A stretch of DNA of 64,000 nucleotides, taken from Trichosphaerium sp. ATCC 40318 (Eukaryota > Protista > Tubulinea). The notes beneath the pieces were generated by a model. It saw nothing but the letters and a program-made list of their open reading frames with translations. It was not told the DNA's origin and made no database searches. The stretch is from the NCBI GenBank assembly GCA_038496445.1, contig JALMLS010000627.1, positions 186,001 through 250,000 of the forward strand, read 5' to 3'. Shown here in pieces: positions 1,151 to 60,865 of the stretch; position 1 is the first letter of the stretch, and each line of letters starts with the position of its first letter. Position numbers and translations under genes: made by a program.

Positions 1151-2599
1151 ATGAATTTCTTACGTATTTCAGTTGAACACGTGCTAGCATACTATCGTGA
1201 AAGCCACCGAGAAGTATTTGATAAAATTACTGAAGAACGTAAAGAAACATTTGTAAAACAACTTGAAAATACTCTAGATGACATAAATACAAGTCTCCTA
1301 AATCAGCTTGATCATTTTATTTACAACCACACTGATACCGTCATAAACGTAAAGAGTGATACGTACACAAGACATTCAGAAGGTTTAAAGCAACCAAAAT
1401 CGAAATTAAGAAGATCCAGGTATTTTTTGTTATTTTTTTGGTTTTTCGTCTTTGATCTTTCTTCTTTTTCTTCTCTTTTGTTCTCTGTTTGCTTTTTTGT
1501 ACTAACATCTTTTAGAAGAACCACGAGAACAGCTTTCATGTTTGAACCTGAACCACATATTCTTGATTTTCCAGTTGAAGTTATTTCAAACATTGTACAA
1601 AAAACTCGTGGAAAAGATAGATTTCCTGTTGCTCAATCGTGTCATCTTATGGCTGATATTATTCATGATATTGTCGGATACAAAAAGATTAAAGTTAGAA
1701 ACCTAGATGACATGTTGAGTATAAGAAAGTACAAGGGTATAATGAACAATAGTATTATTAGGCTCAGGTTCAAGAGCAGCTTGTTCTCTCTGTTATCGGG
1801 ATGTCGTAAGATTGATTCACATTTATTTACTACTTTGAAGGATGATGATCTGAAGGCTTTTGAAGGGGTTCGTTACTTCGACATGGAAGCCCACACCAAA
1901 GTGACAGCTATAGGTCTCAAAGCACTCAAAGGAGTCCACACTATTAACCTCAGTCGCTGTGCAAACTTAACAGATGAGGGCGTACAGGCACTGGCTGGAG
2001 TTCATGAAATCGATCTTAGTCAGTGCATAAATATTACTGATGAAGGAATAAAAGCATTAAAAGGTGTTCACACAATCAGTCTGTACCGTACCCATGTAAC
2101 AGACAAAGGACTTAGAGAATTAAAAGGCGTATATGATATTGGCCTCGGAAAATGTGCTTCTATAACAAATGAAGGTCTAAAAGCACTAAAAGGTGTTCAT
2201 ACCATCAGCCTTTACGAAAATTATCAAATATCAGATGAAGGCATGAAGGCACTGAAAGGTGTTCATAAAATAAACTTGTGTGGTACTTCAGTTACAGATA
2301 AAGGACTTAAACACCTAGCAGGTGTTTATGATATTAACCTTGAAAGATGTGAATATATAACAGATGAAGGTCTCAAAGCACTAAAAGGAGTTCATACTAT
2401 CAGTCTTTGTGATAATGAGCAAATTACAGATGAAGGCCTTAAGCCACTTGTAGGTGTTCATAGAATTGACCTGAATAGCACTTCAGTTACAGATGAAGGC
2501 ATAAAAATATTATACGGTGTTGACTATATTGATGTTTCCTACACTGCAGTAACTTATGAAGGTGCTCACTTTCTAGAAGGCTCATATATATGTCGTTGA
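1151..2599 (+). CDS. N-terminal helical domain + F-box + ~11 short (21/22 aa) leucine-rich repeats
   Basis: F-box ILDFPVEVISNIV...AQSCHLMADII; repeats GVHxIxLxxCxxITDEGxKALx. In-frame 96-nt intron 1420-1515 (GTATTT...TACTAAC...TTTAG). Confidence 0.85.
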   Translation: MNFLRISVEHVLAYYRESHREVFDKITEERKETFVKQLENTLDDINTSLLNQLDHFIYNHTDTVINVKSDTYTRHSEGLKQPKSKLRRSRYFLLFFWFFVFDLSSFSSLLFSVCFFVLTSFRRTTRTAFMFEPEPHILDFPVEVISNIVQKTRGKDRFPVAQSCHLMADIIHDIVGYKKIKVRNLDDMLSIRKYKGIMNNSIIRLRFKSSLFSLLSGCRKIDSHLFTTLKDDDLKAFEGVRYFDMEAHTKVTAIGLKALKGVHTINLSRCANLTDEGVQALAGVHEIDLSQCINITDEGIKALKGVHTISLYRTHVTDKGLRELKGVYDIGLGKCASITNEGLKALKGVHTISLYENYQISDEGMKALKGVHKINLCGTSVTDKGLKHLAGVYDINLERCEYITDEGLKALKGVHTISLCDNEQITDEGLKPLVGVHRIDLNSTSVTDEGIKILYGVDYIDVSYTAVTYEGAHFLEGSYICR

Positions 2600-14761: not shown

Positions 14762-17700
14762 CACAAGTTGGTACGCCAATTAGCCTTTTATGGAAGTTAC
14801 TTTTGTACCGCGAGTTTTCTTCATTGCACGGTACAAGGTTGTAGCAGCGGTTTAAGTAAAAGAACGAGCTAGTATTCAACCATAAACAGCTTATAATCTT
14901 CATAAACGTTAGCAATCTATCGACTGAGGCTATCGTTACCTCAGTACAGGCTAGAAGGTGAGATAAACCCAAAAAAAACTACGTCACCAACAAAAAGTCT
15001 GATTTGACCGTTTTGTACTTACCCGAAGATTGCAGTAAGGACAAAAAAAAACAACATGAACTTCTTCAGAGTGGGCATTGTACGTCTACAATTCATTATC
15101 TGCAATCTAACGTTACTTTTAAAGACGCTCGCGTTTGTTGCATTCCTTGCACTTACTGTTCGTGCTCAATTAGATATACAAGAGGATGATACTATTAACC
15201 ATGTTATCTCTGGTTCATTTACACGCCTCGGGTCTTTCGAAACTGGTGAGTTGAGTTTCACATTTTTTTTTGCGGTTTTTGGAATTAGGTGACTTGGGAA
15301 AAGTGAAGGAAGGTGCTACCGCGGTTTGAAGTACCCGTAGTTCTCCTACATTCCCCCCAACTAATTAATTGCCATTATTTACTAAACGTACTGCAAAGGA
15401 TTTGGGTTCGCTGCGCTTAAAGGAGGTAGTTTCATCACTGAAGACATCTCGCCTCCTCCATATTCGGGTTCTAACAACGAGAATGTAAACGACATTATCG
15501 TTACTCCTTCTGGTATCATTTTCGTTGCTATTGAGGAATATGTGTTCCAATTCACACCAGAAAACAATGAATGGTTACAAGTTGGTGAGAAATTCAAGTA
15601 CGCTCTCCCCTTTCACACCAAATTACGCCATATTTACTCAAAAAAAACCCTTGCCTCAACGCACAATAGCAGATTCATCAAAAAAAAAACCAACCAAAAA
15701 CAACTTTTTATTTGTTTCTTTGTTTGTTGCGTTAAATACTTCAAATGAAACTAACTGTTGACTCTTTAGCTCAGACGTGCGCGCACTTGCGTGGGACGCA
15801 GCTTCAAACCAAATCTATGCTTGTGGTGGCTTCTCTAGACTTGAGAGTTACACTAACATTGCTGTGCACAATACTGCTGACGTACGCTACAATTACACCA
15901 TTCTAGAAAATACGTTTTAACATGTTGGTGTAGAGCACTTTTATGAATCTTTGGGCCGAAATAGCAGTTAATGTTACTGGCACTCCTCTGTGTGATGTTG
16001 GTGGTCTATTTTTTATTCCAGGTGCAACCAACGGCATTGAGCTCCTTATTCAATCCGGCTCCCGATTATGGTGGCAAAACGATCTGACATGGACAAACGA
16101 CAGAAACAGTGTCAATGTCTCCAGCAACTTGCTTACCGACACAGTTAATTTGAGAATGTGGCGCGAAACCGAGAACACTGGAGTAATCTATGTCACAAAT
16201 CCCAATGGATTTACACTTAATGTTACTGGTCAAAACGCCAGCGACATTTGGGATGTCATCTCAACAACTGGTACGAGTTTTAAAACGACGTTATCTACTT
16301 TCTGATTCAATTTTTGTCTGACATTCTATTTAGATGGTGTTGAGTTTACAGGTGTATTCCGTTCTGAAAAGTTTGCCGATATCGATGTAGAGATCAGGAA
16401 CAATCCTGAAAACACAATCACTTATTTTACAAGAAACGCTAATACACGTGTGTATGCTGTTGATGAAGCATCCAGCACAATCTACTTTGCTGCCACAAGA
16501 ACCACAACTCAACTTGATCCTGATCGGGAAAACCAAGTAAACGGTACAGAGCAAGTAACTTACACAAGAGTTGGTCTATTCTCTGCTTCCACAACAATCC
16601 AAACACCTCAAACTTCCGAACAAGTTACAGCCCTCGGTGAAGTATTTTCTGCCGACACCTGTATCTACAGTATGTTCTACGTTGGCAAACTTGTCTTGGC
16701 AGTTGATGATGATTGTACATACCAAAAACGAGTTGCTTTGACTGCGGCCAACATTGGTCTCATTGGATCCAAATGTGGTCAAACTGGTGCTGCCGTCAAT
16801 AGAAATGGTGCTTGTTACACCAACCCTGCCTATGCTATTAACACAAGGTATGTTTTTTTGACCGTTTATTTCTGATATTTCACACTTATCGTTACAAATA
16901 GGTTGAGCAACTCATTCTTGGAGTTGACAGATGCCAACACACTTGTACCAACACTCGGTGGTGGTGTTACTGGAACTGTTTCTGCAGTTACTTTGAGAGA
17001 AGGTTCTAATGATATGCTCTACATTATTGGTGGAGGTGTTACAGAAACTTGGAACACCACAGCATATGGATTAGCCGCTTTGGTCACAAGAGATGGAGAA
17101 TGTACGCCATTTTTTATGCATTTTCTTTTTCAGAGAGAAAACAATCGCTGTGTCAAACCCAAACCACTTTCAGTAAAAAAAGCGACCCTCCTTACTTCTA
17201 CAATCTTTGTTTTTTTGTTTATTATTGTCTAGCATTCTATGCATCCATGTTTAACCCAAGAATTGTGGTTTCCAATGAATTTTATGTATCCAATTACAAT
17301 GGTATACGGGAGGTTCTAGAATTCGACAATGAGATCTTTGTTGCTGGACAATTTGCCTACCTTGGTCTCAACGGTAATGCTTCTTACACATATTAATACC
17401 TTTTTACTTACAACTCTTGTGTTTGTTTAGGAAACACAACATTCAATTCAATTGCAAAACTAAATGTATCTGATGGAACATTTATGCCTTTGGGTTCTGG
17501 AAGTACGTACTCGTTTTTTAATAATTGTTGTTCATGGTTTGAACTACTTTTGTTTCTTTTGTGTTGTTGCTTTATATATTAACTCTTTGTTTGTAGTTGT
17601 TGACAGAACAGTGGTTGGACGTGATTTCCATGATGACTACATCGTTGCCCCTGGTATTGGTACGTCAATATGATACTATTTGTTATTTTTTTTCCTAAAT

Positions 17701-18825
17701 GTTTGCTTTCTGTAGTATCTGATATGGTTGGTTTTGGCGGTAAATTGTATGTTGTTGGTACCTTCACCACAGTTGATGGCCTTTCTTGCGGAAACTTTGC
17801 CATTTATGATGTAAACACAAACCAATGGACAGTTCCTTCTGCTGGTGAGTAAACAACCTTGTTTTTGAACAGTTTCTATTTTAATAGTGTTCCATTCTCT
17901 AATACATTCATTAAAGGTGGTTTTGATAGCGGACTTACCTCTATTGAATTCTATAGAGGACGTTTTATTATTGGAGGTTCTTTTTCGTTTGCTGGTAGCC
18001 TCAGAACACCAAATGTTGTTGCATACAATATACAAACAGAAAGATATGAAAGAATGAATTCTGGTCTCCTTGGAAGTGTACGTGACTTGCAAGTTTTACC
18101 AGGTAACTCCCTGGTTGCGCTCGGTCGATTCTCTTTATTAGCAGGTTTCAGTACTGTATCTATTGGTACGTTGTTTTACGGTCTCAACCTTAACTTCATT
18201 TGTTTTTTTGTACACGTGTACTTACATGTTTTGTTAAGCTGAGTTCAAAGACGACATTTGGCGCTCTTTGGATTGCCAATGCACAGATGTTGGTTGTCGT
18301 TTTGATAATGTGGGTTACGAATGTATTCCAGTCAGTGGCACAGGATACACTTTAAATATTGTTGAGAAAAATGCGTTTATCGTCCACTCTACTGGTTTTT
18401 ACAGAATGTCTACACGAGACCCTAGCTTCCCACCACAAGAAATCGACAATTTTCTTGATGGCGCACTTACTGACAGGCGGGTTGCTTCCACAAGAGGTAT
18501 CAATGGCCTTCCAAGTGGCGCAGTGGTAAGCATAAAAAAAGAAAAGAACCAAAGAGTAACCTAATGACATCTATTTTTAGGTCATGGTATATGGCACACT
18601 TCAATCATCCGGAGAACCAAATGGTGCAGGTGGTGTAAATGTATTGCTTGATGAACGCAATGTTGCACGTAACCCATTTGGTGGTATTAGAGAGAATGTT
18701 GATATTGTTATATCTGATTTCTCAACACCAAGAATATTCAATTCTGTTGGAAAACTTGCTGTATCTGCTGTTCTCGGTTTGGTTTGCATCTTTGCTCTTT
18801 TGTTGTAAACAGCTTAGCAATAAAT
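14762..18825 (+). repeat. Copy A of ~4.06-kb direct duplication (promoter to poly(A) signal)
   Basis: Begins CACAAGTTGGTACGCCAATTAGCC, ends TAAACAGCTTAGCAATAAAT; same termini at 23373 and 27431. Confidence 0.95.
15056..18808 (+). CDS. ~900-aa GPI-type beta-propeller surface glycoprotein (Rax2-like blades), copy A
   Basis: Signal peptide TLAFVAFLALTVRA; blades KLYVVGTFTTVDGLSCGNFAIYD..W and IIGGSFSFAGS; many NxS/T sequons; hydrophobic C-terminus SVGKLAVSAVLGLVCIFALLL* with no cytoplasmic tail; ~14 GT-AG introns. Confidence 0.8.
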
Positions 18826-19089
18826 GACTTAACACGTTTTCTTATTATGCTTTTCCTTCCTTCCCTTGCTTTCCTCAGCAGTACCTGGTTGACGTTTATT
18901 CTCCTACTAAGTTGCAGGTATGATAGTAAACCACACTGCCTTTGTAAGTTACTATGACATTGGCTTTTGCTTGTTAAATATTCTCAATCTTTCACGCAAT
19001 TGATTGATCGTCTAGTAGTTTGGTTTTTATTTAAAGTTAATAATTCTTAGAGGTGTTAGCCTACAGTTGATAATCCCCATATCTCATTT

Positions 19090-20692
19090 CTAAATTTTCC
19101 AGACAACATCTACTTTGGCATCTTTTAACACATTAACAGCTTCTTCTGTAACGTTGGTGCAATTCTCAAGATAAATTGATTGTACACATTTTAACTCTTT
19201 TACTCCCTCATCTGTTATTTGTTCACAACCCATGAGAGTAATGTTATGGCACCCTCTCAGCACTTTGATACCTTCGTCATTTACTAGGGTATAAGATAGA
19301 TCTATCGTGTGAACCCCTTCAAGTGCTTTTAAGCCTTCTTGTGTTATTCTTCTACAACCCCGAATATTAATGTTGTGAACCCCTTTTAGAGCTTTGATGC
19401 CTTCATCACTTACTGAAGTATAACACAAATTAATGTTATGAACTCCTCCTAGCGCCTTGATGCCTTTATCACTTACTAAAGTATTAGATAGGTCAATAGT
19501 ATGGACGCCAGCAAGGTGTTGTAGCCCTTCATCTGTCACTTGACAATTGTAAGGTAAATCGAATAAACTCCTTTTAGCGCCTTGACGCCTTCTCCAGTTA
19601 CTGAAGTATTTGAAAGATTAATAGTATGAACACCACCTAGTTCGCTTATGCTTTCATCTGTTATTTGCTTACATCTTTCAAGATTAATAGTATGAACACC
19701 TTTTAGTGCTTTAACACCTTCATTTGAAACAAATGTTCCACGAAGATCAATTGTGTGAACGCCAGCTAACAACTCGATTCCATTGTCTGAGACGTACATA
19801 CACCCACTGAGATCAACAGAGTGAATGTTTTGAGCAATTGCTGCAAGATCATAATCTGTACATTGTGAAGTCATTCTAAAGTTTTTACATCCAGGCAATA
19901 ATGAGTAAATACTGAAACGCTTAAGATTAAGTAGTGAAATCTGACTATTGTTCATCACACCCTTGTACTCTTGTATCTTTAGAAAATCTTGTAAATTTGA
20001 AGGGAACACGTGTTTGTATCCAACAATATCATGAATAATATCAGCAAAAACACTACAAGATTGAGCAGCAGAATATCTTGAACGTGAATCTGTATAATCT
20101 AGAATATTTGAAAGAACCTCAGGTGGAAGACCTAGAATACTTTTTTCCTTTTGTTGTGTTGATTTTGTAGGATCACTAGTTCAAGTCAGAAGAGAACCTA
20201 TGTAAGCAAAGGTGAATTGTTTTTTGAAACCAAACTTTCCAGGAAAATAAAAACAGAAGTTACAAAAAACCTACTTGCTACCTTGGAGAATCTGCGATAA
20301 GGCTCATATGTGAGGTTGTACACGGCTCTCCTAAAAACCTCACACATGACCTCACTCACAAAGGGTAATTGTTAAAGTTGATTTTCTTTCAAAAGGCAAG
20401 GAGGCTTGAAAGAGCAAATCTCGTACAGTATCTTTTGTTTGATTCTTGGAAGCGTGAGATCATCAATCCTGTCAGAAGATACAGTCTTACGACTATGTGT
20501 GCCAGTGTTGTGTTTGTAGAGAACGTTATCAAGTTGTTCTTCTAAATTTGCGTTTACAGCGTTCAAAACACTCCCAACTTGTTTTACTAGCGTTTGGTGG
20601 TGTAATGGATCTATGATTTTATTGTACGCTTTCGCGTGGTTATCGCGATAGTATTTTAATGCTTGTTTTACTGTAACACCTAAAAAACTCAT
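19090..20692 (-). CDS. N-terminal helical domain + F-box + ~11 LRR protein; one frameshift near 19550
   Basis: MSFLGVTVKQALKYYRDNH... exon; F-box ILGLPPEVLSNIL...AQSCSVFADIIHDIVGYK at ~20020-20140; ORFs 19536-20009 and 19090-19539 join if one T is restored (CTTAC to CTTTAC). 5' splicing uncertain. Confidence 0.75.
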
Positions 20693-21392
20693 GAGGTTCA
20701 CTTGATGTAGATTGTGATAAATAACTGATTTTAAGCCACGTGATTCGGAAAAAAATTGCACGTGACAAGTTGTATAGTAGTTGTTCAAGTCAACAAAGCT
20801 AGATCGTATAACAGAGCTGTAGTACGCACAAGAGGCACAGATACAAGCTTTGCTTGTTTATCAAATAACAGCTTTGCATTTGATTGTGAACCTCAAAATG
20901 CCATTACAGTCCAGAGTGTTGTTCCTGTTATTGTTAGAGCAAGTTGAGTTTGCTTTAATTACAATGTTATTGTACCTGATGAAAGCAAGTGTCGCCTAAC
21001 TCACATGCAGCCATTGATGGTGAACACTTAATGGCTACCAAAGTTGTTGCAAAATTGAATGATAGACAATGTTCAAGCGCCTCACAAATGACCATTTCGA
21101 TCAACAGTGAGTGCTATACTATTCGCATCATATATTCAATATCATAGTTGTTTTCAGGCATCTCAACAACCCTCTTGCCTTCACCTGCACAATACTGTTA
21201 ACATTTAAAACACGCAATATTATACTTCTTGTGCATATAAACTTCTTTTATACTTTCCAGCCCCTACAACACTCCATTTACACTACCTATGCTATTTGGT
21301 AGATCATTCGCAAAATGTACCCAAATAATGCTGCCTTTAGAAGTCACTTTATTTGGTTATTAAGTTCAGTTGTCTTTTAATTTTACTTCTGT

Positions 21393-22499
21393 CTAACGGT
21401 AAATATTACAAGCGTTGGACAGAACTTTAATCCCTTCATCTGTAATCTTGTCACAAGCTCTCATAAAAATAGTATCAACACCAACAAGTGATTTAAGGCC
21501 TTCATCAGTAATATTCCCACACCAATCAAGGTGAATAGTGTGAACCCCTGCCAAAGCTTCTAATCCTTTATTTGTGACAAGAGTTTTTTTGAGGTCAATT
21601 TCATGAACTCCTGCCAAACACTTTATTCCGTCATCTGAAATGCCAAAACAGTGCTCAAGATCAATGGTGTGAACACCTTTGAGTGCTTTCAAACCTTCAT
21701 CTGTTATGCCAGTGCACATAAGCCCAATAGTATGAACGCCTGTCAATGCTTTTATTCCTTTGTCTGTGATACCAGTACGTCCAACATTAATACTATAAAC
21801 ACCAGCTAATGCTATTACACTTTCATCTGTAACGTCAGTGAACGCAAGGCTAATTGTGTGAACACCTGCCAGCGATGTAACACCTTCATCACTAATACTC
21901 TTACACCCTTCAAGACAAATTGTATGAACACCACTAAGAGCTTTTAACCCTTCATCTGTAACACAAGTAGCTGCAAGGTTAATATCATGAACCCCTGATA
22001 AACACTTTATTCCTTCATCTGTAATACTCTTACACAGACGAAGATTTATCACGTGAACACCTGAAAGTGCTTTCAAACCTTCATCTGTAATTCTACAGAA
22101 AGAAAGGTTAATTGTATGAACGCCAGCAAGTGCTTTTACACCTTCATCTGTTATCTTCTTACAAAATCTAAGATTAATATTGTGAACGCCTGCAAGTGCC
22201 TTGACTATTGAGTCTGTAACATTTGCACTCAGCCGAAAATCAATATTTTGAATGCCTGCGAGAACTTTAAGTTTCCCATCACACACTGCGTTTGTCACTC
22301 TAACTTGAGTATGCTGTAGAGCTCCTTTATACTTTATAAAAGTCAGTACACTATCTATAGTCTTTAATGTCGCTCTTTCGTATCCAATGATATCATGAAC
22401 AATGGCAGAAAGAGTGCGACAGCTCTGAGCAGCTGGATATCGTGATACAGTTGTAAAACAGAGAATATGTCCCAAAATCTCATTTGGTAATCGTAGCAT
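21393..22499 (-). CDS. F-box + ~13 LRR protein, intact
   Basis: MLRLPNEILGHIL...AQSCRTLSAIVHDIIGY, then GVHxIxL...TDEGxKAL units; TATA-like TATAAAAAG upstream (~22603-22611, minus strand). Confidence 0.88.
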   Translation of the reverse strand: MLRLPNEILGHILCFTTVSRYPAAQSCRTLSAIVHDIIGYERATLKTIDSVLTFIKYKGALQHTQVRVTNAVCDGKLKVLAGIQNIDFRLSANVTDSIVKALAGVHNINLRFCKKITDEGVKALAGVHTINLSFCRITDEGLKALSGVHVINLRLCKSITDEGIKCLSGVHDINLAATCVTDEGLKALSGVHTICLEGCKSISDEGVTSLAGVHTISLAFTDVTDESVIALAGVYSINVGRTGITDKGIKALTGVHTIGLMCTGITDEGLKALKGVHTIDLEHCFGISDDGIKCLAGVHEIDLKKTLVTNKGLEALAGVHTIHLDWCGNITDEGLKSLVGVDTIFMRACDKITDEGIKVLSNACNIYR

Positions 22500-23372
22500 A
22501 AAGCACTCTGAACTGTGTAATGGCTCTCTGTTGATAGTTAATGTCGAATGTACATTAAATTGTGAAATTGTGCCTCAAAGATGCCATACTAGGCTTGTGT
22601 CCTTTTTATACTCTTTGTGTAATTCACCACAAGTCACTACGCAAATAGTAGACCATTGTCATAGGGTTAGTAAACAACAGACGCCGAACTACAGTCAAAC
22701 AAAATCTATTTATTTCGCACGTGGCCACAACTCTACCAAACGCGATGGAAACACCTTAAATATTACAACAACATTGATTGATGTTTTAATCAACCAGACA
22801 ACGCGTGAAGAAACAAATAAAAAGATTTATTTCGTTACAAGTCTTTGTTAAATGCGTGTCGTGATGTGCTCTGAAAAGTGAGCACTTTGGACGATTTCTG
22901 TACGTCTCCTTTATTTTTCGTGTCTTGTAGTTATTTAAACTCAAGAACGTATACAGTGGCTTCTACAGTATCTCCGTTTTTAACGACATGTTCCATCGAC
23001 AACATTGGTTGTTATTTTCTCTAACGAGACAGATTGTAGCAGAAGAGGAAACCTCTTTGCTCAGAATTACAGAAATGTATTGCTTTTGTTGCGACTAACT
23101 ATGATTCGGTTGTCTTATCACGTGTTGGATGTAAACACCTAGAGTCATACCAGGTATAATGCCAATCTCGCTCGCAAGGTTGGGTGGTTTTTCCAAGCAT
23201 CAACCAACAGGCAACACTGATGGAGTGTACGTCTACTTAGCGAAAAACAAACAATAACTTCGAAAAAGAGGCAATTTGTTGGTTCACTAAGTAACCTATC
23301 AGATAAATCTACTAAAAAGAAACGAGGTTGGGTTGGGTAGTGGTGACAGACATAACGTGAAAAATAGCCACG

Positions 23373-26300
23373 CACAAGTTGGTACGCCAATTAGCCTTTT
23401 ATGGAAATTTTTTGTACCGCGCGTTTTTTCTTCATTGCACATAGCAGCTGGTATAACCACAATTGTGCAATCGCCTTTACAACTTAAAGGCGAAATATCT
23501 AACGCTAACGTTAGTAAACTACCAACTGAGCCTATCGTTACCTCAGTACAGGCTAGAATAGGCGAAATAAACCAAAAAAAAGTACGTCACCAACAAAAAG
23601 TCTGATTTGACCGTTTTGTACTTACCCGAAGATTGCAGTCAGGACAAAAAAAAACAACATGAACTTCTTCAGAGTGGGCATTGTACGTCTACAATTCATT
23701 ACCCGCAATCTAACGTTACTTTTAAAGACGCTCGCGTTTGTTGCATTCCTTGCACTTACTGTTCGTGCTCAATTAGATATACAAGAGGATGATACGGTTC
23801 ACCACACTTTTGCTGGTCAATTTACACGCCTCGGGTCTTTCGAAACTGGTGAGTTGAGTTTCACATTTTTTTGCGGTTTTTGGAATTAGGTGACTTGGGA
23901 AAAGTGATGGAAGGTGCTACCGCGCTTTCCTTTCAACGTTACTTGCATACCCGTAGTTCTCCTGCGTTCCCCTCATTTCTAAATTGTAACCTTGCCTTGT
24001 TCCGTTTACTAAACGTACTGCCAAAGGATTTGGGTTCGCTGCGCTTAAAGGAGGTAGTTTCATCACTGAAGACATCTCTCCTCCTCCTGGTGTTGGTGTT
24101 TCAGGTGACAATGTAAACGACATTATCGTTACTCCTTCTGGTATCATTTTCGTTGCTATTGAGGAATATGTGTTCCAATTCACACCAGAAAACAATGAAT
24201 GGTTACAAGTTGGTGAGAAATTCAAGTACGCTCTCCCCTTTCACACCAAATTACGCCACATTTACTCAAAAAAGAGTAAACCGAAACATAGCCGCACAAC
24301 GAATTATTACAAAAACAGCTTTTTATTGTTTACCTTTGTTTCTTGTTGCGTTAAATACTTCAAATGAAACTAACTGTTGACTCTTTAGCTCAGACGTACG
24401 TGGGCTTGCTTGGGACTCAGCTTCAAACCAAATCTATGCTTGTGGTGGCTTCTCTAGACTTGAGAGTTACACTAACATTGCTGTGCACAATACTGCTGAC
24501 GTACGCTACACTTACCATTCTAGAAAATACGTTTTAACATGTTGGTGTAGAGCACTTTTATGAATCTTTGGGCCGAAATAGCAGTTAATGTTACTGGCAC
24601 TCCTCTGTGTGATGTTGGTGGTCTATTTTTTATTCCAGGTGCAACCAACGGCATTGAGCTCCTTATTCAATCCGGCTCCCGATTATGGTGGCAAAACGAT
24701 CTGACGTGGACAAACGACAGAAACAGTGTCAATGTCTCCAGCAACTTGCTTACCGACACAGTTAATTTGAGAATGTGGCGCGAAACCGAGAACACTGGAG
24801 TAATCTATGTCACAAATCCCAATGGATTTACACTTAATGTTACTGGTCAAAACGCCAGCGACATTTGGGATGTCATCTCAACAACTGGTACGAGTTTTAA
24901 AACGACGTTATCTACTTTCTGATTCAATTTTGTCTGACATTCTATTTAGATGGTGTTGAGTTTACAGGTGTATTCCGTTCCGAAAAGTTTGCCGATATCG
25001 ATGTAGAGATCAGGAACAATCCTGAAAACACAATCACTTATTTTACAAGAAACGCTAATACACGTGTGTATGCTGTTGATGAAGCATCCAGCACAATCTA
25101 CTTTGCTGCCACAAGAACCACCACTCAACTTGATCCTGATCGGGAAAACCAAGTAAACGGTACAGAGCAAGTAAGTTACACAAGAGTTGGTCTGTTCTCT
25201 GCTTCCACAACAATCCAAACACCTCAAACTTCCGAACAAGTGACAGCCCTCGGTGAAGTATTTTCTGCCGACACCTGTATCTACAGTATGTTCTACGTTG
25301 GCAAACTTGTCTTGGCAGTTGATGGTGATTGTACATACCAAAAGCGAGTTGCTTTGACTGCAGCCAACATTGGTCTCATTGGATCCAAATGTGGTCAAAC
25401 TGGTGCTGCCATCAATAGAAATGGTGCTTGTTACACCAACCCTGCCTACGCTATTAACACAAGGTATGCCTTGTTTGGTTAAAAACCATTGATTTCTGAT
25501 ATTTCACACTTATCGTTACAAATAGGTTGAGCAACTCATTCTTGGAGTTGACAGACGCCAACACACTTGTACCAACACTCGGTGGTGGTGTTACTGGAAC
25601 TGTTTCTGCAGTTACTTTGAGAGAAGGTTCTAATGATATGCTCTACATTATTGGTGGAGGTGTTACAGAAACTTGGAACACCACAGCATATGGATTGGCC
25701 GCTTTGGTCACAAGAGGTGGAGAATGTACGCCATTTTTATGTTTTTCGCTTTCTTTTGAAAGAAAAGATTCGCTGTACAAGCCCAAACCACTTTCAGTCA
25801 AAAAAGCGACCTCCCGCCCTACTTTTAGTTCCTATTGGTCGTTGCTTATGCGCTTCTAGCATTCTACGTATCTATGTTTAATCCAAATATTGTGATTTCA
25901 AGTGTTTTCTACGACCAGCAATATGATGGCATCTTTAACGTTCTAGAATACAACAATGAGATCTTTGTTGCTGGACAATTTGCCTACCTTGGCCTCAACG
26001 GTAAGTGCTTCTTACACATATTAATACCTTTTTACTTACAACTCTTGTGTTTGTTTAGGAAACACAACATTCAATTCAATTGCAAAACTAAATGTATCTG
26101 ATGGAACATTTATGCCTTTGGGTTCTGGAAGTACGTACTCTTTTTTTAATAATTGTTGTTCATGGTTTGAACTACTTTTGTTTCTTTTGTGTTGTTGCTT
26201 CTTTATATATTAACTCTTGTTTGTAGTTGTTGACAGAACAGTGGTTGGACGTGATTTCCATGATGACTACATCTCTGCTCCTGGTTCTGGTATGTAACAT

Positions 26301-27431
26301 TGTTTTTTTGTTATTATTTAAAGTGAAGTGAATAACAGTTACTTGTAGTATCTGATATGGTTGGTAAGAGTAATAAACTATATGTCGTTGGTACTTTCAA
26401 CACAGCTGGTGACCTTGCTTGCGCAAACTTTGCCATCTATGATTTAGACGAGGGTGTCTGGACAGTTCCTAATGGTGAGTACTTCACTTTTACGATTTCT
26501 TTCTATTCTAACACATTGTAAGGTGGTGTTGATGGTATTATTTCCTCTATCGAATCTTACAAAAATTGGATGGTCATTGGCGGTGTGTTTTCATTTGCTG
26601 GATCTGTTCAAACACCAAATATTGCTGGATACAATACTAAATCCGAGCAGTTTGAGAGACTTAACAGTGGTTTAAATGGAAAAATAAATGATATTCAAGT
26701 TGCAGGTAATAAGCTTATTGCTCTTGGAGAGTTTACTACAACAAACGCTGGTATCAGTACAATGGGTGTTGGTACGATAATTCTTTTCTGTTCTATAATT
26801 TTTGTAAACATACTTACAGAGTTTGTTAAGCTGAATTCTTTGACGACAAAGTATGGCGTGGTTTGGCTTGCAACTGCGCAACACTTGGTTGTGATGATGA
26901 AAACGTTGGTTTTGCTTGTCTCAGACTTACGTCTAGCGGTGTAGGTTACAGTTTAAATATTGTTGGTTTTACCGCATTCATGTTCCACTCAACTGGAGTC
27001 TACGGATTGCGCACTAATGACATTTCATTCCCACCACAAAACCTTGGATCTCTTCTCAATGGAGATTCTGCTCAATCTACCACTAGAATTCTTGCTTCCA
27101 CAAGAGGTATCAATGGCCTTCCAAGTGGTGCACAGGTAATTTAAACAGCAACTTTTGTTTGTGTGAAAAGTGTTGACAGTTTATTTTAGGCTTTGGTATT
27201 TGGTACAACTACTACTGGTTCTGGTAACAGTGTTAGCAATGCAAATGTATTGCTCGGTGGCCGTAATGTTGCTAGATACCCATTTGGTGGTATGCCAGCA
27301 GCGCTCAATGTAACTGATTTCGCAACACCAGCAATAACTGCAATCAGTTCTGTTGGAAAACTTGCTGTATCTGCTGTTCTCGGTTTGGTTTGCATCTTTG
27401 CTCTTTTGTTGTAAACAGCTTAGCAATAAAT
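23373..27431 (+). repeat. Copy B of ~4.06-kb direct duplication
   Basis: Matches 14762-18825 in blocks. Confidence 0.95.
23659..27414 (+). CDS. GPI-type beta-propeller surface glycoprotein, copy B
   Basis: Same exon-intron structure and identical C-terminal hydrophobic peptide as copy A; divergent patches and C-terminal third. Confidence 0.8.
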
Positions 27432-27950
27432 ACTTTAACCTGTTCATGTTGTTCAGAGCTTTTTTTTTGGCTATCGTGGTCTGTACTAAGGAATTTCGGC
27501 TAGTTTAAAGTTGAGTGTATGCCACTTTGGTTTAATGTTGCGTTTGAGACATTTTACCTTTTTAAAGTGCTCAGTAGGCTCCTAGTTGTTAGAAGTGAAT
27601 CGGTTGTTATCTTTTTACAATCACCATAACAGCGTTGTACAATAATAATATTTTTTTCTTCTTTACACATATAAAAAGTAGTTACAAATACAATTGCGAG
27701 TATTGATTGGAGCTCATTAGGTGTATCAATCATGCTTAAACGCTCTGTTGTGACAGACTAGTATGTGAAGGCTAATAAAGGCTTTCCGTGTAAGAATACT
27801 AGTGATTGATTTTTGATCGATTTCCAAATGAAGTTTAATTAGTATATTACTAACTTATGTGCCGCATCACAATGAGAAAAGAGCTGCACAAGTACAACAC
27901 GGTATTGTAGCTTTCATATCAATCAATACAGAAATAAACAATCTTGAAGC

Positions 27951-29546
27951 TTTACTTTACTTTACTTTACTTTTATTCCGGTCAAGATTCAGTTTGACGG
28001 TCTTACAAATTTGTTTTTACAACTGTTTTGTCCTCCCATCTTCATCCACTTGTCGCCAGGGCCCCTGATAGGGGTCTCACATAAAGTTAGCCCATGATAT
28101 TCATCATCGACCAAGGTAGACCAGACTGTGTAGAATACCTGCCCAGCTCGGACCGCGCACTAGCTCCGTATGGAGGCGTAGCTAGTCAGTGTTAGTAATG
28201 TTGAGTTTTTTATATAGCTCATGAAACATGATGTTTCTTTTATCGTAGACGCGTTTGTGGCCATTCAGTATTCGGAGTTGCAGCTGTTTGAGTTTGTCTT
28301 TGATGTATTTCGGGTCATATCCTGCATATTTACATGCTTCAACTGTGTTGGTTAAGATGTATGCTCCTGTGTACGCTTCTCTAGCGTATTTAGTTTTTTT
28401 TGCTTTTTTGTTTTTTCGTTTCTTGGTGTTGCGGAGGTTTTTATTGACGTAGTTTTTGATTTCCTCTGTATTTTCTGTACGTACATCTTCAGTTGCTTTA
28501 CAATGGTTGATTATGTGATCTGTATCTTCTTTGTGGTGCCCGCATAGTATGCAGCTGGGTTCCTTGTATTTTTTGTTGAAGTAGTCAGTGTTGTGTGGTC
28601 CAGTGGCTTTATTTAGTGTGTATCTGCCACTTAGGTTGTTGTTTCGCAGTTTAAATTGGAAGGTGGTGATGTTGTCCATTAGTGGCATTTTGTCGTTGAT
28701 GACTTGATTGGATATCTTATGCTCAACTTGTGTCAGGATTGGGAGTTTGGCATTCATGTCTTTTTCATGTATTTGGTTACTGATGTTTCTGATCCGTTTA
28801 CGGATGTTTCCTTCAATGATTTCATTATCATTGTATAAGGTGTAGTTGAAGGCTACTCGTCTATTCGGCGTTGGAGGCTTCTTTAAGTATGTTCCTTCCT
28901 TTGCTAGGGTGTCCGCTTCTTCGTTTCCGTGAAGAATCCATTCTATGTTTTTACCAAATTGTTTCTCAAGTGCTTTAAGTTCTTTGTTTAGGAGTTCCAG
29001 CTTCTTAGGTTGGTTTGCGTATTTCTTTCTTTTTTCTTCTACATGACTGGGTACTTTCCAGAATTTTGTGTATGATTTATGTTTGTCTCTTTGTTTGATT
29101 GTTTGTAGGATTTCTATGATGAGTGATGCATTGTACGCATTCATTCTTTGAGAGTGTTTCCATTTGTGCCAGTTTTCGACCGCCGTGATGACGTATTTGG
29201 AGTCTGTGAAGAGGTTGATGTTTGAGGTCTGGTGTGTGTTTTTGAGTGCCCAGAGTGCAGCTTCTAGCTCGGCTGCGTCAACTGTGTTTCCGGTAATGCA
29301 TGGTAGCGCTACATTGTTAGGGGAGCTTCTATTGAAGTACACTCCGAAGCCTGCTGTGTCGCTGTGTTCCATCTTGGAGCCGTCTGTCCATATGTCCACT
29401 GTTTTGCTGGGTTCAGTGGGTGGTTCCCATTTCTTATATATTTCGTAGTGTTGTGGTTGTTTGATTTTGAGGTGATTTCGTATTTTTCCATTTCTTTTTG
29501 AGATCAGTGCTTTCAGTTGGTTTATGTAAGTTGGTGTGACGTATTG
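27951..29546 (-). mobile_element. 5'-truncated non-LTR retrotransposon (RNase H + zinc finger end of ORF2)
   Basis: 3' tail (GTAAA)4 at 27951-27970 preceded by AATAAA; direct repeat TTGAAGC at 27944-27950 and 29547-29553; intronless, strongly A-rich sense strand. Confidence 0.85.
28182..29546 (-). pseudogene. Truncated LINE ORF2: RNase H and C-terminal CCHC-type finger, RT missing
   Basis: WTDGS, AELEAA, FTDS, KVPSH, GNEEADTLAKEG; CILCGHHKEDTDHIINHC. Confidence 0.88.
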
Positions 29547-29642
29547 TTGAAGCGTACTTTCAATCAAAAGTATAAGCCAGTTGCAACTTAATGTTTCTTA
29601 TTTTTTGAGTGACCAACGAAAGAAACAACAAGAGCTTTGACA

Positions 29643-45283: not shown

Positions 45284-46910
<1,627 letters not shown>

Positions 46911-56807: not shown

Positions 56808-57504
56808 TTACATTGTGAAGTTAAGATTAATCGTTTTCCCAGTCAATACAGTCAGCCCTTCATATGTAACTTGATGACACTTGTATAAATGAATGGTATG
56901 AACACTTACTAAAGCCTTAATACCGTCATCTGTAACCTGTGTTTCATTAAGATTAATAGTGTGTACACCTGCTAAAGCCTTGATCCCAACATCTGTAACC
57001 TTTGTTCGCTGTAAGTTTATCGTATGAACACCAGCTAAAGCCCGAATACCATCATCTGTGATACCTTCACATCTTCCTAAACCTATTGTATGAATTCCAG
57101 CTAATGCCTTAATGCCTTCATCTGTAATGCCATTACAGCAAGATAGATCAATGTGTTTAAAAGCTTTAAAATCAGATGGTTTCAGTGGTGATGTGCCATT
57201 TTCATATTCAAATAGGACACCATACGCTCCTTTGAGGTACTTTAAATGTTGACGTTCGATAAAGAATTTAATGGATAGAGTGTTTGTCTTGATGAGATGT
57301 GGCATTTTTTTGAATAGTTTTTTGAGCTGTTGTTTGGATTTGATCACTCTTCTATTTTTATCCCACGTGCTGTATTGCGATTTTTAATAATTTTGATGTA
57401 CGTACTACGTAAGGCATAGATAGAGGCGAAACGAATTGTAAAATAATAACAATAACTTCAACAGGGATATCATCAAAGACTGCGCTCTTTGAGTTCGTCG
57501 CCAT
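56808..57504 (-). pseudogene. F-box + ~5 LRR gene, frame broken just after the F-box
   Basis: MATNSKSAVFDDIPVEVIVIILQF...QHVG then TAA at ~57358-57360; LRR frame resumes if 2 nt are restored (GYKN, cf. GYK/GYE in paralogs). Confidence 0.75.
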
Positions 57505-59889: not shown

Positions 59890-60865
59890 TTATTTGGAAT
59901 TGACCCGAGCAATGTCATTTTTAACACTTTGACCATTCTCATACATCCGTTTTATCATCTCTCCTGAGCGTAACCAATATAAACACTCTCCATTTTTAAA
60001 GCCGTTTACACAGGTGTAAGACTCTTTCAGTTGTCCATTATAATACCACTTTTTAACCTCACCGTGCATTTTGCCATTTACACAATCACATTCTGACCCA
60101 AGTTGTCCATTGTCATACCACCACTTACATTTTCCTTCCATTTTACCTTTAACATAAAACATATGTTCGCTAAGTTGACAATTGTCATACCACTCATAGT
60201 AATCTCCTTCTATTTCATCATCAACAGTAACATACACTTGAGATAGGTTACCATTCCTATACCATCGTCTAACCTCACCAGTCAAAACATCATCAACGTG
60301 ATAACACTTTTCATACAATTGTCCATTATTATACCATCTCTTGTGCTCTCCTTCTCTTTACCATTAACAAAACTACCACATATCTCCAATTGGCCATTAC
60401 AATGCCAATGCCTAACCTCTCCATCTATCTTACCTTTTACATAAAACAAACGTTTGTGTAGCTTGCCATTTCTGTACCAACGCTTATACTCTCCATCAAG
60501 TATACCTTCTGAGAAATAGCAATGTTCATATAACTTGCCATTGGCGTACCAATTCTTTGAATCTCCGTCCTTCAAGCCGTTGACGAAGGTACATTGACGC
60601 ATCAACTTTTTACGAATGTACTTTTTCCATTTACCATGTTTCGCGTTGTTGTTATCAAATCTAATCATTGACGCTTGTTTTGACAATAAAGGCCATTTGT
60701 AGTATATTTCTATGTCAAGATCTGTAATATCAAGCTGTAACTCCGTTGGAAGATGCACTATGACGTCGTATGGGAGCTCTTGAGACAAAACCTTTAAATT
60801 CTAACGTTGGTACTGAATATGTTGTTAAATCATCAACGTACATTTAAACTGCGCTTGCGAGACAT
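59890..60865 (-). CDS. F-box-like + MORN-variant repeat protein; one frameshift near 60357
   Basis: ATG at 60865, short GTACGT intron, HLPTELQLDITDLDIEIYYKWPLLSKQ; ORFs 60282-60788 and 59890-60318 join if one A is restored (GGTAAA[A]GAGAA = GKREGE). Confidence 0.78.

Follow-up and report, generated by a model that had tools for sequence, protein, structure and literature searches.

A tandem pair of predicted surface-protein genes in Trichosphaerium with a mosaic of identity probably attributable to old duplication and repeated gene conversion

Self-comparison of a 64,000-nucleotide (nt) stretch of the Trichosphaerium sp. ATCC 40318 assembly (contig JALMLS010000627.1, positions 186,001 to 250,000; hereafter the window), intron-rich eukaryotic DNA of about 38% GC, revealed one long repeat, whose two copies at 14762-18830 (copy A) and 23373-27435 (copy B) are 83% identical from end to end. 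Genes A and B, which these copies contain, are homologous and lie in the same orientation, and their alignment alternates between near-identical tracts and strongly diverged islands. We propose that an old duplication was followed by repeated gene conversion, that the coding islands were kept by fit within the protein and that the result is two fixed versions of one surface protein, a reading to which, taken whole, we give a probability of roughly 60%. The gene models, built from splice consensus and frame conservation, are as follows (coordinates are window positions).

15056-18808, plus strand: gene A, 14 exons, 891 amino acids (aa), intact, with GT-AG introns, an open frame and intron phases as in gene B
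Exons of gene A, plus strand: 15056-15079, 15125-15245, 15399-15597, 15770-15881, 15934-16270, 16334-16847, 16902-17101, 17233-17373, 17431-17502, 17597-17659, 17716-17844, 17917-18165, 18239-18525, 18581-18808
23659-27414, plus strand: gene B, 14 exons, 895 aa, intact, with GT-AG introns and phases identical to those of gene A
Exons of gene B, plus strand: 23659-23682, 23728-23848, 24027-24225, 24389-24500, 24551-24887, 24950-25463, 25526-25725, 25860-26000, 26059-26130, 26227-26289, 26349-26474, 26523-26771, 26831-27135, 27190-27414

A two-state hidden Markov model over the A/B alignment distinguished states with 1.5% and 34% difference per column and divided off some 15 divergent segments. 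Identity is unbroken over as many as 221 columns, whereas none of 2000 permutations gave a run of more than 91. The same pattern holds at fourfold degenerate sites, of which 6 of 189 (3%) differ in aa 131-499 and 29 of 79 (37%) in aa 590-869 (Fisher P = 3e-12, permutation P = 1e-4), so that the mosaic does not merely reflect variable constraint on the protein and argues for an old duplication with repeated gene conversion. An earlier note on this DNA had already attributed the patchwork to segmental conversion, and its observations stand in part: the tracts that it called near-identical (15810-16855/24425-25470 and 17328-17643/25955-26273) are 97.9% and 97.8% identical, the C-terminal block that it called diverged (17644-18741/26274-27347) is 62.6% identical, and the coding patches that it named are 56% and 46% identical and translate as described, its list omitting a mostly synonymous exonic island at 15778-15798. 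The segments are listed below.

14762-15055, plus strand: upstream of A, homologous to 23373-23658; 14762-14807 near-identical, 14808-14929 61% identical, 14930-15055 94.5% identical
23373-23658, plus strand: upstream of B
15192-15217 (B 23795-23820), plus strand: exonic island 1, covering aa 32-39; predicted strand B of blade 1, the blade with circular closure
15323-15378 (B 23924-24005), plus strand: intron 2 island
15453-15482 (B 24081-24110), plus strand: exonic island 2, covering aa 66-77; predicted DA loop between blades 1 and 2
15645-15723 (B 24273-24340), plus strand: intron 3 island
15778-15798 (B 24397-24417), plus strand: exonic island 3, aa 118-125, four synonymous and two replacement changes, predicted strand A of blade 3
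15799-16851 (B 24418-25467), plus strand: longest homogenized region, 98.6% identical, including introns 4 and 5, in two parts of different apparent age
16852-16868 (B 25468-25492), plus strand: intron 6 island
17112-17326 (B 25735-25953), plus strand: intron 7 and exon 8 island, aa 503-534, predicted DA loop from blade 6 to blade 7 and strand A of blade 7
17327-17642 (B 25954-26272), plus strand: homogenized tract including introns 8 and 9
17643-18742 (B 26273-27348), plus strand: diverged C-terminal block of Kelch/Rax2-like blades, covering aa 590-869 and 55% identical at the aa level
17713-17730 and 18483-18517, plus strand: identical patches inside the C-terminal block
18743-18824 (B 27349-27430), plus strand: identical 82-nt tract with the putative glycosylphosphatidylinositol (GPI)-type signal, the stop codon and AATAAA

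Near-identical introns and promoter interrupted by divergent coding patches, as the earlier note summarized the pair, describe introns 1, 4, 5, 8 and 9 (94-98% identical), but introns 2, 3, 6 and 7 contain divergent, indel-rich islands (72-81%), introns 10-13 are at 53-59%, the chance level for unrelated introns (52 ± 4%), and the upstream region is patchy. Across the converted 5′ part, which includes nine introns, islands occupy 262 of 825 intron columns (32%) versus 172 of 1765 exon columns (10%), an excess in introns that is expected if tracts begin in conserved exons and then run some way into introns; per-column divergence is about equal in promoter, intron and exon islands (0.24-0.42). 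Near-identical tracts cross exon-intron borders, which points to exchange at the DNA level, and neighbouring tracts are unequally diverged (2 substitutions in 541 columns versus 10 in 511), which indicates several conversion events. Conversion through cDNA is ruled out by the homogenization of whole introns, a single unequal crossover by the about 15 switches, and a recent block duplication or haplotig by flanks that are unrelated and an upstream region that is homologous but 39% diverged. Gene conversion is thus very probably the cause of the mosaic. At the 3′ end, the identical tract stops exactly at an AATAAA common to both copies (18819-18824 and 27425-27430). Upstream, A and B share the proximal 126 bp of promoter, from which they are probably co-regulated, and a near-identical block of about 45 bp (14762-14807 and 23373-23416), which lies some 250-290 bp upstream of the two start codons and is bounded by diverged DNA, is a candidate shared promoter element.

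Age and selection were estimated from the two sequences with the GY94 codon model. The C-terminal block gave a synonymous divergence (dS) of 0.96-0.99 and a ratio of replacement to synonymous divergence (omega) of 0.41 (0.58 by simple counts), the pooled exonic islands a dS of 1.3-1.7 and an omega of 0.25-0.32 (the three patches named by the earlier note are, by themselves, saturated and unusable), and the homogenized codons a dS of 0.026, an omega of 0.17 and a kappa of about 6. Omega is significantly below 1 in all three classes, at P = 0.002 or less for the islands and the C-terminal block, where it is 0.25-0.41. Because dS of the islands is comparable to that of the C-terminal block, the islands are about as old as the duplication. 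The divergence is therefore old and under purifying selection throughout; diversifying selection is not seen, and positive selection is rejected by omega below 1, although with only two sequences it may still act at individual sites.

The substitutions also bear on whether the identical tracts could be collapsed or mis-polished chimeras, or A and B two haplotypes placed in tandem by the assembly. A frameshift near 19550 in a nearby leucine-rich repeat (LRR) gene suggests that the assembly may contain errors, but the tracts are not identical, and 10 of the 13 changes in aa 131-499 are synonymous against 3 replacements (binomial P = 1e-4), which, with the kappa and omega of the homogenized codons, marks two real sequences under constraint and not a collapsed consensus. 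Both frames remain open across about 15 switches, and the 2-kb flanks of A and B are unrelated on both sides, so the copies are not haplotigs. An assembly artefact is accordingly very improbable.

The A and B proteins each begin with a hydrophobic signal and carry eight or nine sequons for N-glycosylation, and they share eleven ectodomain cysteines. They end in a hydrophobic tail with small residues before it and nothing after it, no other peak reaching transmembrane-level hydropathy; by inspection and hydropathy, we read this tail as a GPI signal according to the usual rules. Pfam, homologue and fold searches were run exon by exon. Exon 12 matched Pfam Rax2 (PF12768; 36.9 and 39.0 bits, cut-off 28.8) and exon 11 matched Kelch_2 (26.9 bits, cut-off 21.3), matches that, together with the signal peptide and the tail, support the GPI-type β-propeller surface protein that the earlier note had proposed. 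A profile built from the three Pfam-matched blades gave weak internal matches at aa 33-55, 114-159 and 526-571, and twelve blades were assigned by motif: three by Pfam, three weakly by the internal profile and six by eye. By hand assignment, blade 1 is without a strand A, a lone strand-A-like segment stands directly before the GPI signal, and a 140-aa β-rich insert (aa 160-300) follows blade 3. By analogy with Kelch architecture, the simplest arrangement is most likely two six-bladed propellers with circular closure. Exon 13 of B found no match among 1.84 billion representatives, and no ESM Atlas match of exon 5 or exon 6 reached 0.9; the propeller scaffold, which the earlier note did not recognize as described, indeed appears undescribed, the exon-by-exon searches having found no database relatives. 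The predicted location and fold, together with the lack of any catalytic domain match in these searches, make a binding or adhesion role likely.

According to the mechanism that we favour, an old tandem duplication (dS about 1) would have produced two genes, each encoding a secreted protein of Kelch/Rax2-type blades that is N-glycosylated and GPI-anchored. Repeated DNA-level conversion between A and B, starting in conserved exons and spilling over into introns, would keep alike the proximal promoter, the GPI signal, the signal peptide and the greater part of propeller 1, including its insert, and the islands would be ancestral divergence that conversion never erased. Intron islands would persist because indel-rich heterology blocks tracts; the survival of the short coding islands is probably due to a poor fit between a converted patch and the diverged part of the protein that it would meet. 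Co-adaptation of the coding islands is suggested by where they lie: in the blade that a strand from a diverged segment would close, in the loop next to that blade and where the chain enters the diverged propeller 2. In the hand-assigned blades, island 1 corresponds to strand B of blade 1; strand A, its partner, would be supplied either by the diverged C terminus (aa 853-862) or by the island at aa 526-533. Island 2 corresponds to the loop by which the chain leaves blade 1, the exon 8 island to a loop and a strand that lead into blade 7, and aa 590-594 lead into blade 8. The outcome would be two fixed versions of one surface binding or adhesion protein (for prey, substrate or cell contact), with a common scaffold and a different propeller 2 and interface. 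On this reading the pair would not be a switching system, and the sequence shows no evidence of antigen switching.

The same duplication and conversion could, however, have left every island as a neutral remnant, if tracts stall where mismatches and indels are locally dense and whatever evolved fastest turned into a lasting barrier; A and B would then encode proteins that are functionally interchangeable or differ only incidentally. The threefold higher share of islands in introns, the similar divergence of promoter, intron and exon islands, omega below 1 and a C-terminal block without face bias (see below) all speak for this view, as does a toy forward simulation that includes no selection against conversion and reproduces the exon share of islands. 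Among the 113 simulation runs accepted on intron island share and background divergence, though, at least three short exon-only islands arose in only 2 (about 2%; 4% for islands of any length). Moreover, the normally fast-evolving signal peptide, GPI signal, long loops and insert are fully homogenized, yet indel-free coding islands of 21-31 nt survive between tracts of more than 100 nt. The simulation thus gives modest, model-dependent support to selection on the coding islands; we judge that their selective retention has slightly better than even odds, and that purely neutral islands are a reasonable but rather unlikely account.

The earlier note had interpreted the patches differently, as variable loops, perhaps imported from other paralogs or alleles, that would make the pair a variant surface antigen, a kin-recognition system or a pathogen receptor. 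The predicted surface location of the protein would suit such a system, and two patches fall in predicted DA loops; in Kelch propellers, the pocket face is made up of DA and BC loops (PMC6650413). By this predicted position two islands could be binding loops; island 1 is instead a predicted core strand. Differences in the C-terminal block show no face bias (50% on the pocket face versus 59% on the other face, with 39% in strands), and face-specific variation there is rejected on these values. The core-strand position of island 1 and the lack of face bias favour retention by fit with a diverged partner over freely variable loops, a role against which omega below 1 and the threefold preference of islands for introns also speak. 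As to import, the 64-kb window holds no third copy or relic of the family, and hence no donor; the same islands occur in introns and promoter, each needing its own import; the shared proximal promoter points to co-expression; and the proteins have no Ig-like domains and no cytoplasmic tail. Imported patches are therefore improbable. We hold equally doubtful the broader proposal that this free-living amoeba has a recognition system of which A and B are only the visible part. Conversion would there shuffle propeller 2 and the loops around blade 1 among more copies or alleles, and a previously undescribed GPI-anchored double propeller would thereby acquire a specificity for prey, pathogens or kin that differs between strains.

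Several points weigh against co-adapted islands in a double propeller. Blades 2, 4, 5, 6, 11 and 12 were assigned by eye only, AlphaFold models of single exons were poor (predicted local distance difference test scores of 36 and 43), and a fold search with the exon 5 model was meaningless. Searches with exons 5 and 6, with exon 13 of B and with alignments of exons 11 and 12 found no relatives or orthologs, the tools used detecting only proteins of similar length or exact short words. The islands' share of exon columns, 0.10, agrees with the neutral simulation, whose median is 0.08; most changes in exonic island 3 are synonymous; and blade 7 (aa 536-589) is homogenized, although it would belong to propeller 2.

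The evolutionary process is already known; the protein scaffold is not. If retention by fit is true, the islands mark residues that must match the diverged propeller 2, and could directly guide chimera and binding tests on this orphan surface protein of an amoeba; the pair would then also be a clean two-gene example of how fit within a molecule limits conversion. The pair further shows frequent homologous exchange in this protist. Greater significance would follow only if the patches were polymorphic between strains.

Between A and B lie two minus-strand genes of F-box/LRR type. The first (19040-20693, minus strand) is shifted in its LRR frame near 19550, and is thus a pseudogene or affected by an assembly indel; in its N-terminal helical segment it is similar to the LRR gene at 1151-2599. 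F-box-like/LRR_6 genes at 21393-22499 (minus strand), 1151-2599 (plus strand) and 56808-57383 (minus strand) form one family, 65-75% alike, dispersed in the window and intronless or nearly so. About 770 bp downstream of gene B, an open reading frame with an RNase H domain (28182-29597, minus strand; PF00075, E = 6e-15) and strong strand skew resembles the 3′ part of a 5′-truncated non-long-terminal-repeat retroelement; no reverse transcriptase domain was seen in it. Two genes with MORN_2 repeats and an F-box-like beginning belong to a type that is common among the giant viruses of amoebae; they occupy 98-886 and 59893-60800 (both minus strand), the latter apparently split over two frames. GAPDH (46142-46907, plus strand) has an unusual S-loop region in place of the common DWRGGR motif, and RPL10 extends from 11292 onward, its exon having its best match among solved structures in Dictyostelium.

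Among known proteins, fungal Rax2/Kelch proteins resemble A and B in that exons 11 and 12 match Kelch_2 and PF12768 above cut-off and in being extracellular multi-blade proteins. Rax2 is a polarity landmark of about 1200 aa with a transmembrane helix and a cytosolic tail, whereas A and B end in a GPI-type signal, and their N-terminal half, scanned exon by exon, matched no other Rax2 domain. The tectonins of Physarum, amoebozoan surface β-propellers proposed to bind bacteria (PMC2707011), are a functional analogue with a different blade type, no exon scanned having matched the tectonin repeat in Pfam and no pattern of conversion being cited for tectonins. Dictyostelium TgrB1/TgrC1 are likewise amoebozoan surface genes reshaped by local recombination (10.1101/2025.08.01.668227), but Tgr proteins are transmembrane TIG/IPT proteins that form a heterotypic pair and are polymorphic between strains, whereas A and B are same-strand homologous copies with a GPI-type tail, in whose scanned exons no TIG/IPT domain was matched in Pfam. 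On the features tested, A and B are not members of the Tgr, tectonin or Rax2 families. Variant surface antigens of the VSG, VSP or var type are under diversifying selection on exposed segments, unlike A and B with their low omega and lack of face bias.

The closest biological precedent, conversion between GPI-anchored surface-gene pairs in an amoebozoan, is the Gal/GalNAc lectin pair igl1/igl2 of Entamoeba, whose cysteine-rich products are unrelated in sequence to A and B. This GPI-anchored pair is homogenized centrally and at the 3′ end (PMC3125142); conversion is proven there by orthologs, whereas A and B are intron-rich propeller genes known from the paralog pair alone. Divergence peaks under conversion have been described for the human red/green opsins and Drosophila CG18281/CG17637 (PMC3924837, PMC2588116), which, like A and B, are tandem duplicates homogenized by conversion with short coding peaks kept apart. 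In those pairs the flanking introns are homogenized and selection was shown with orthologs, whereas in A and B islands also occupy four of the nine 5′ introns and one third of the gene has escaped conversion entirely.

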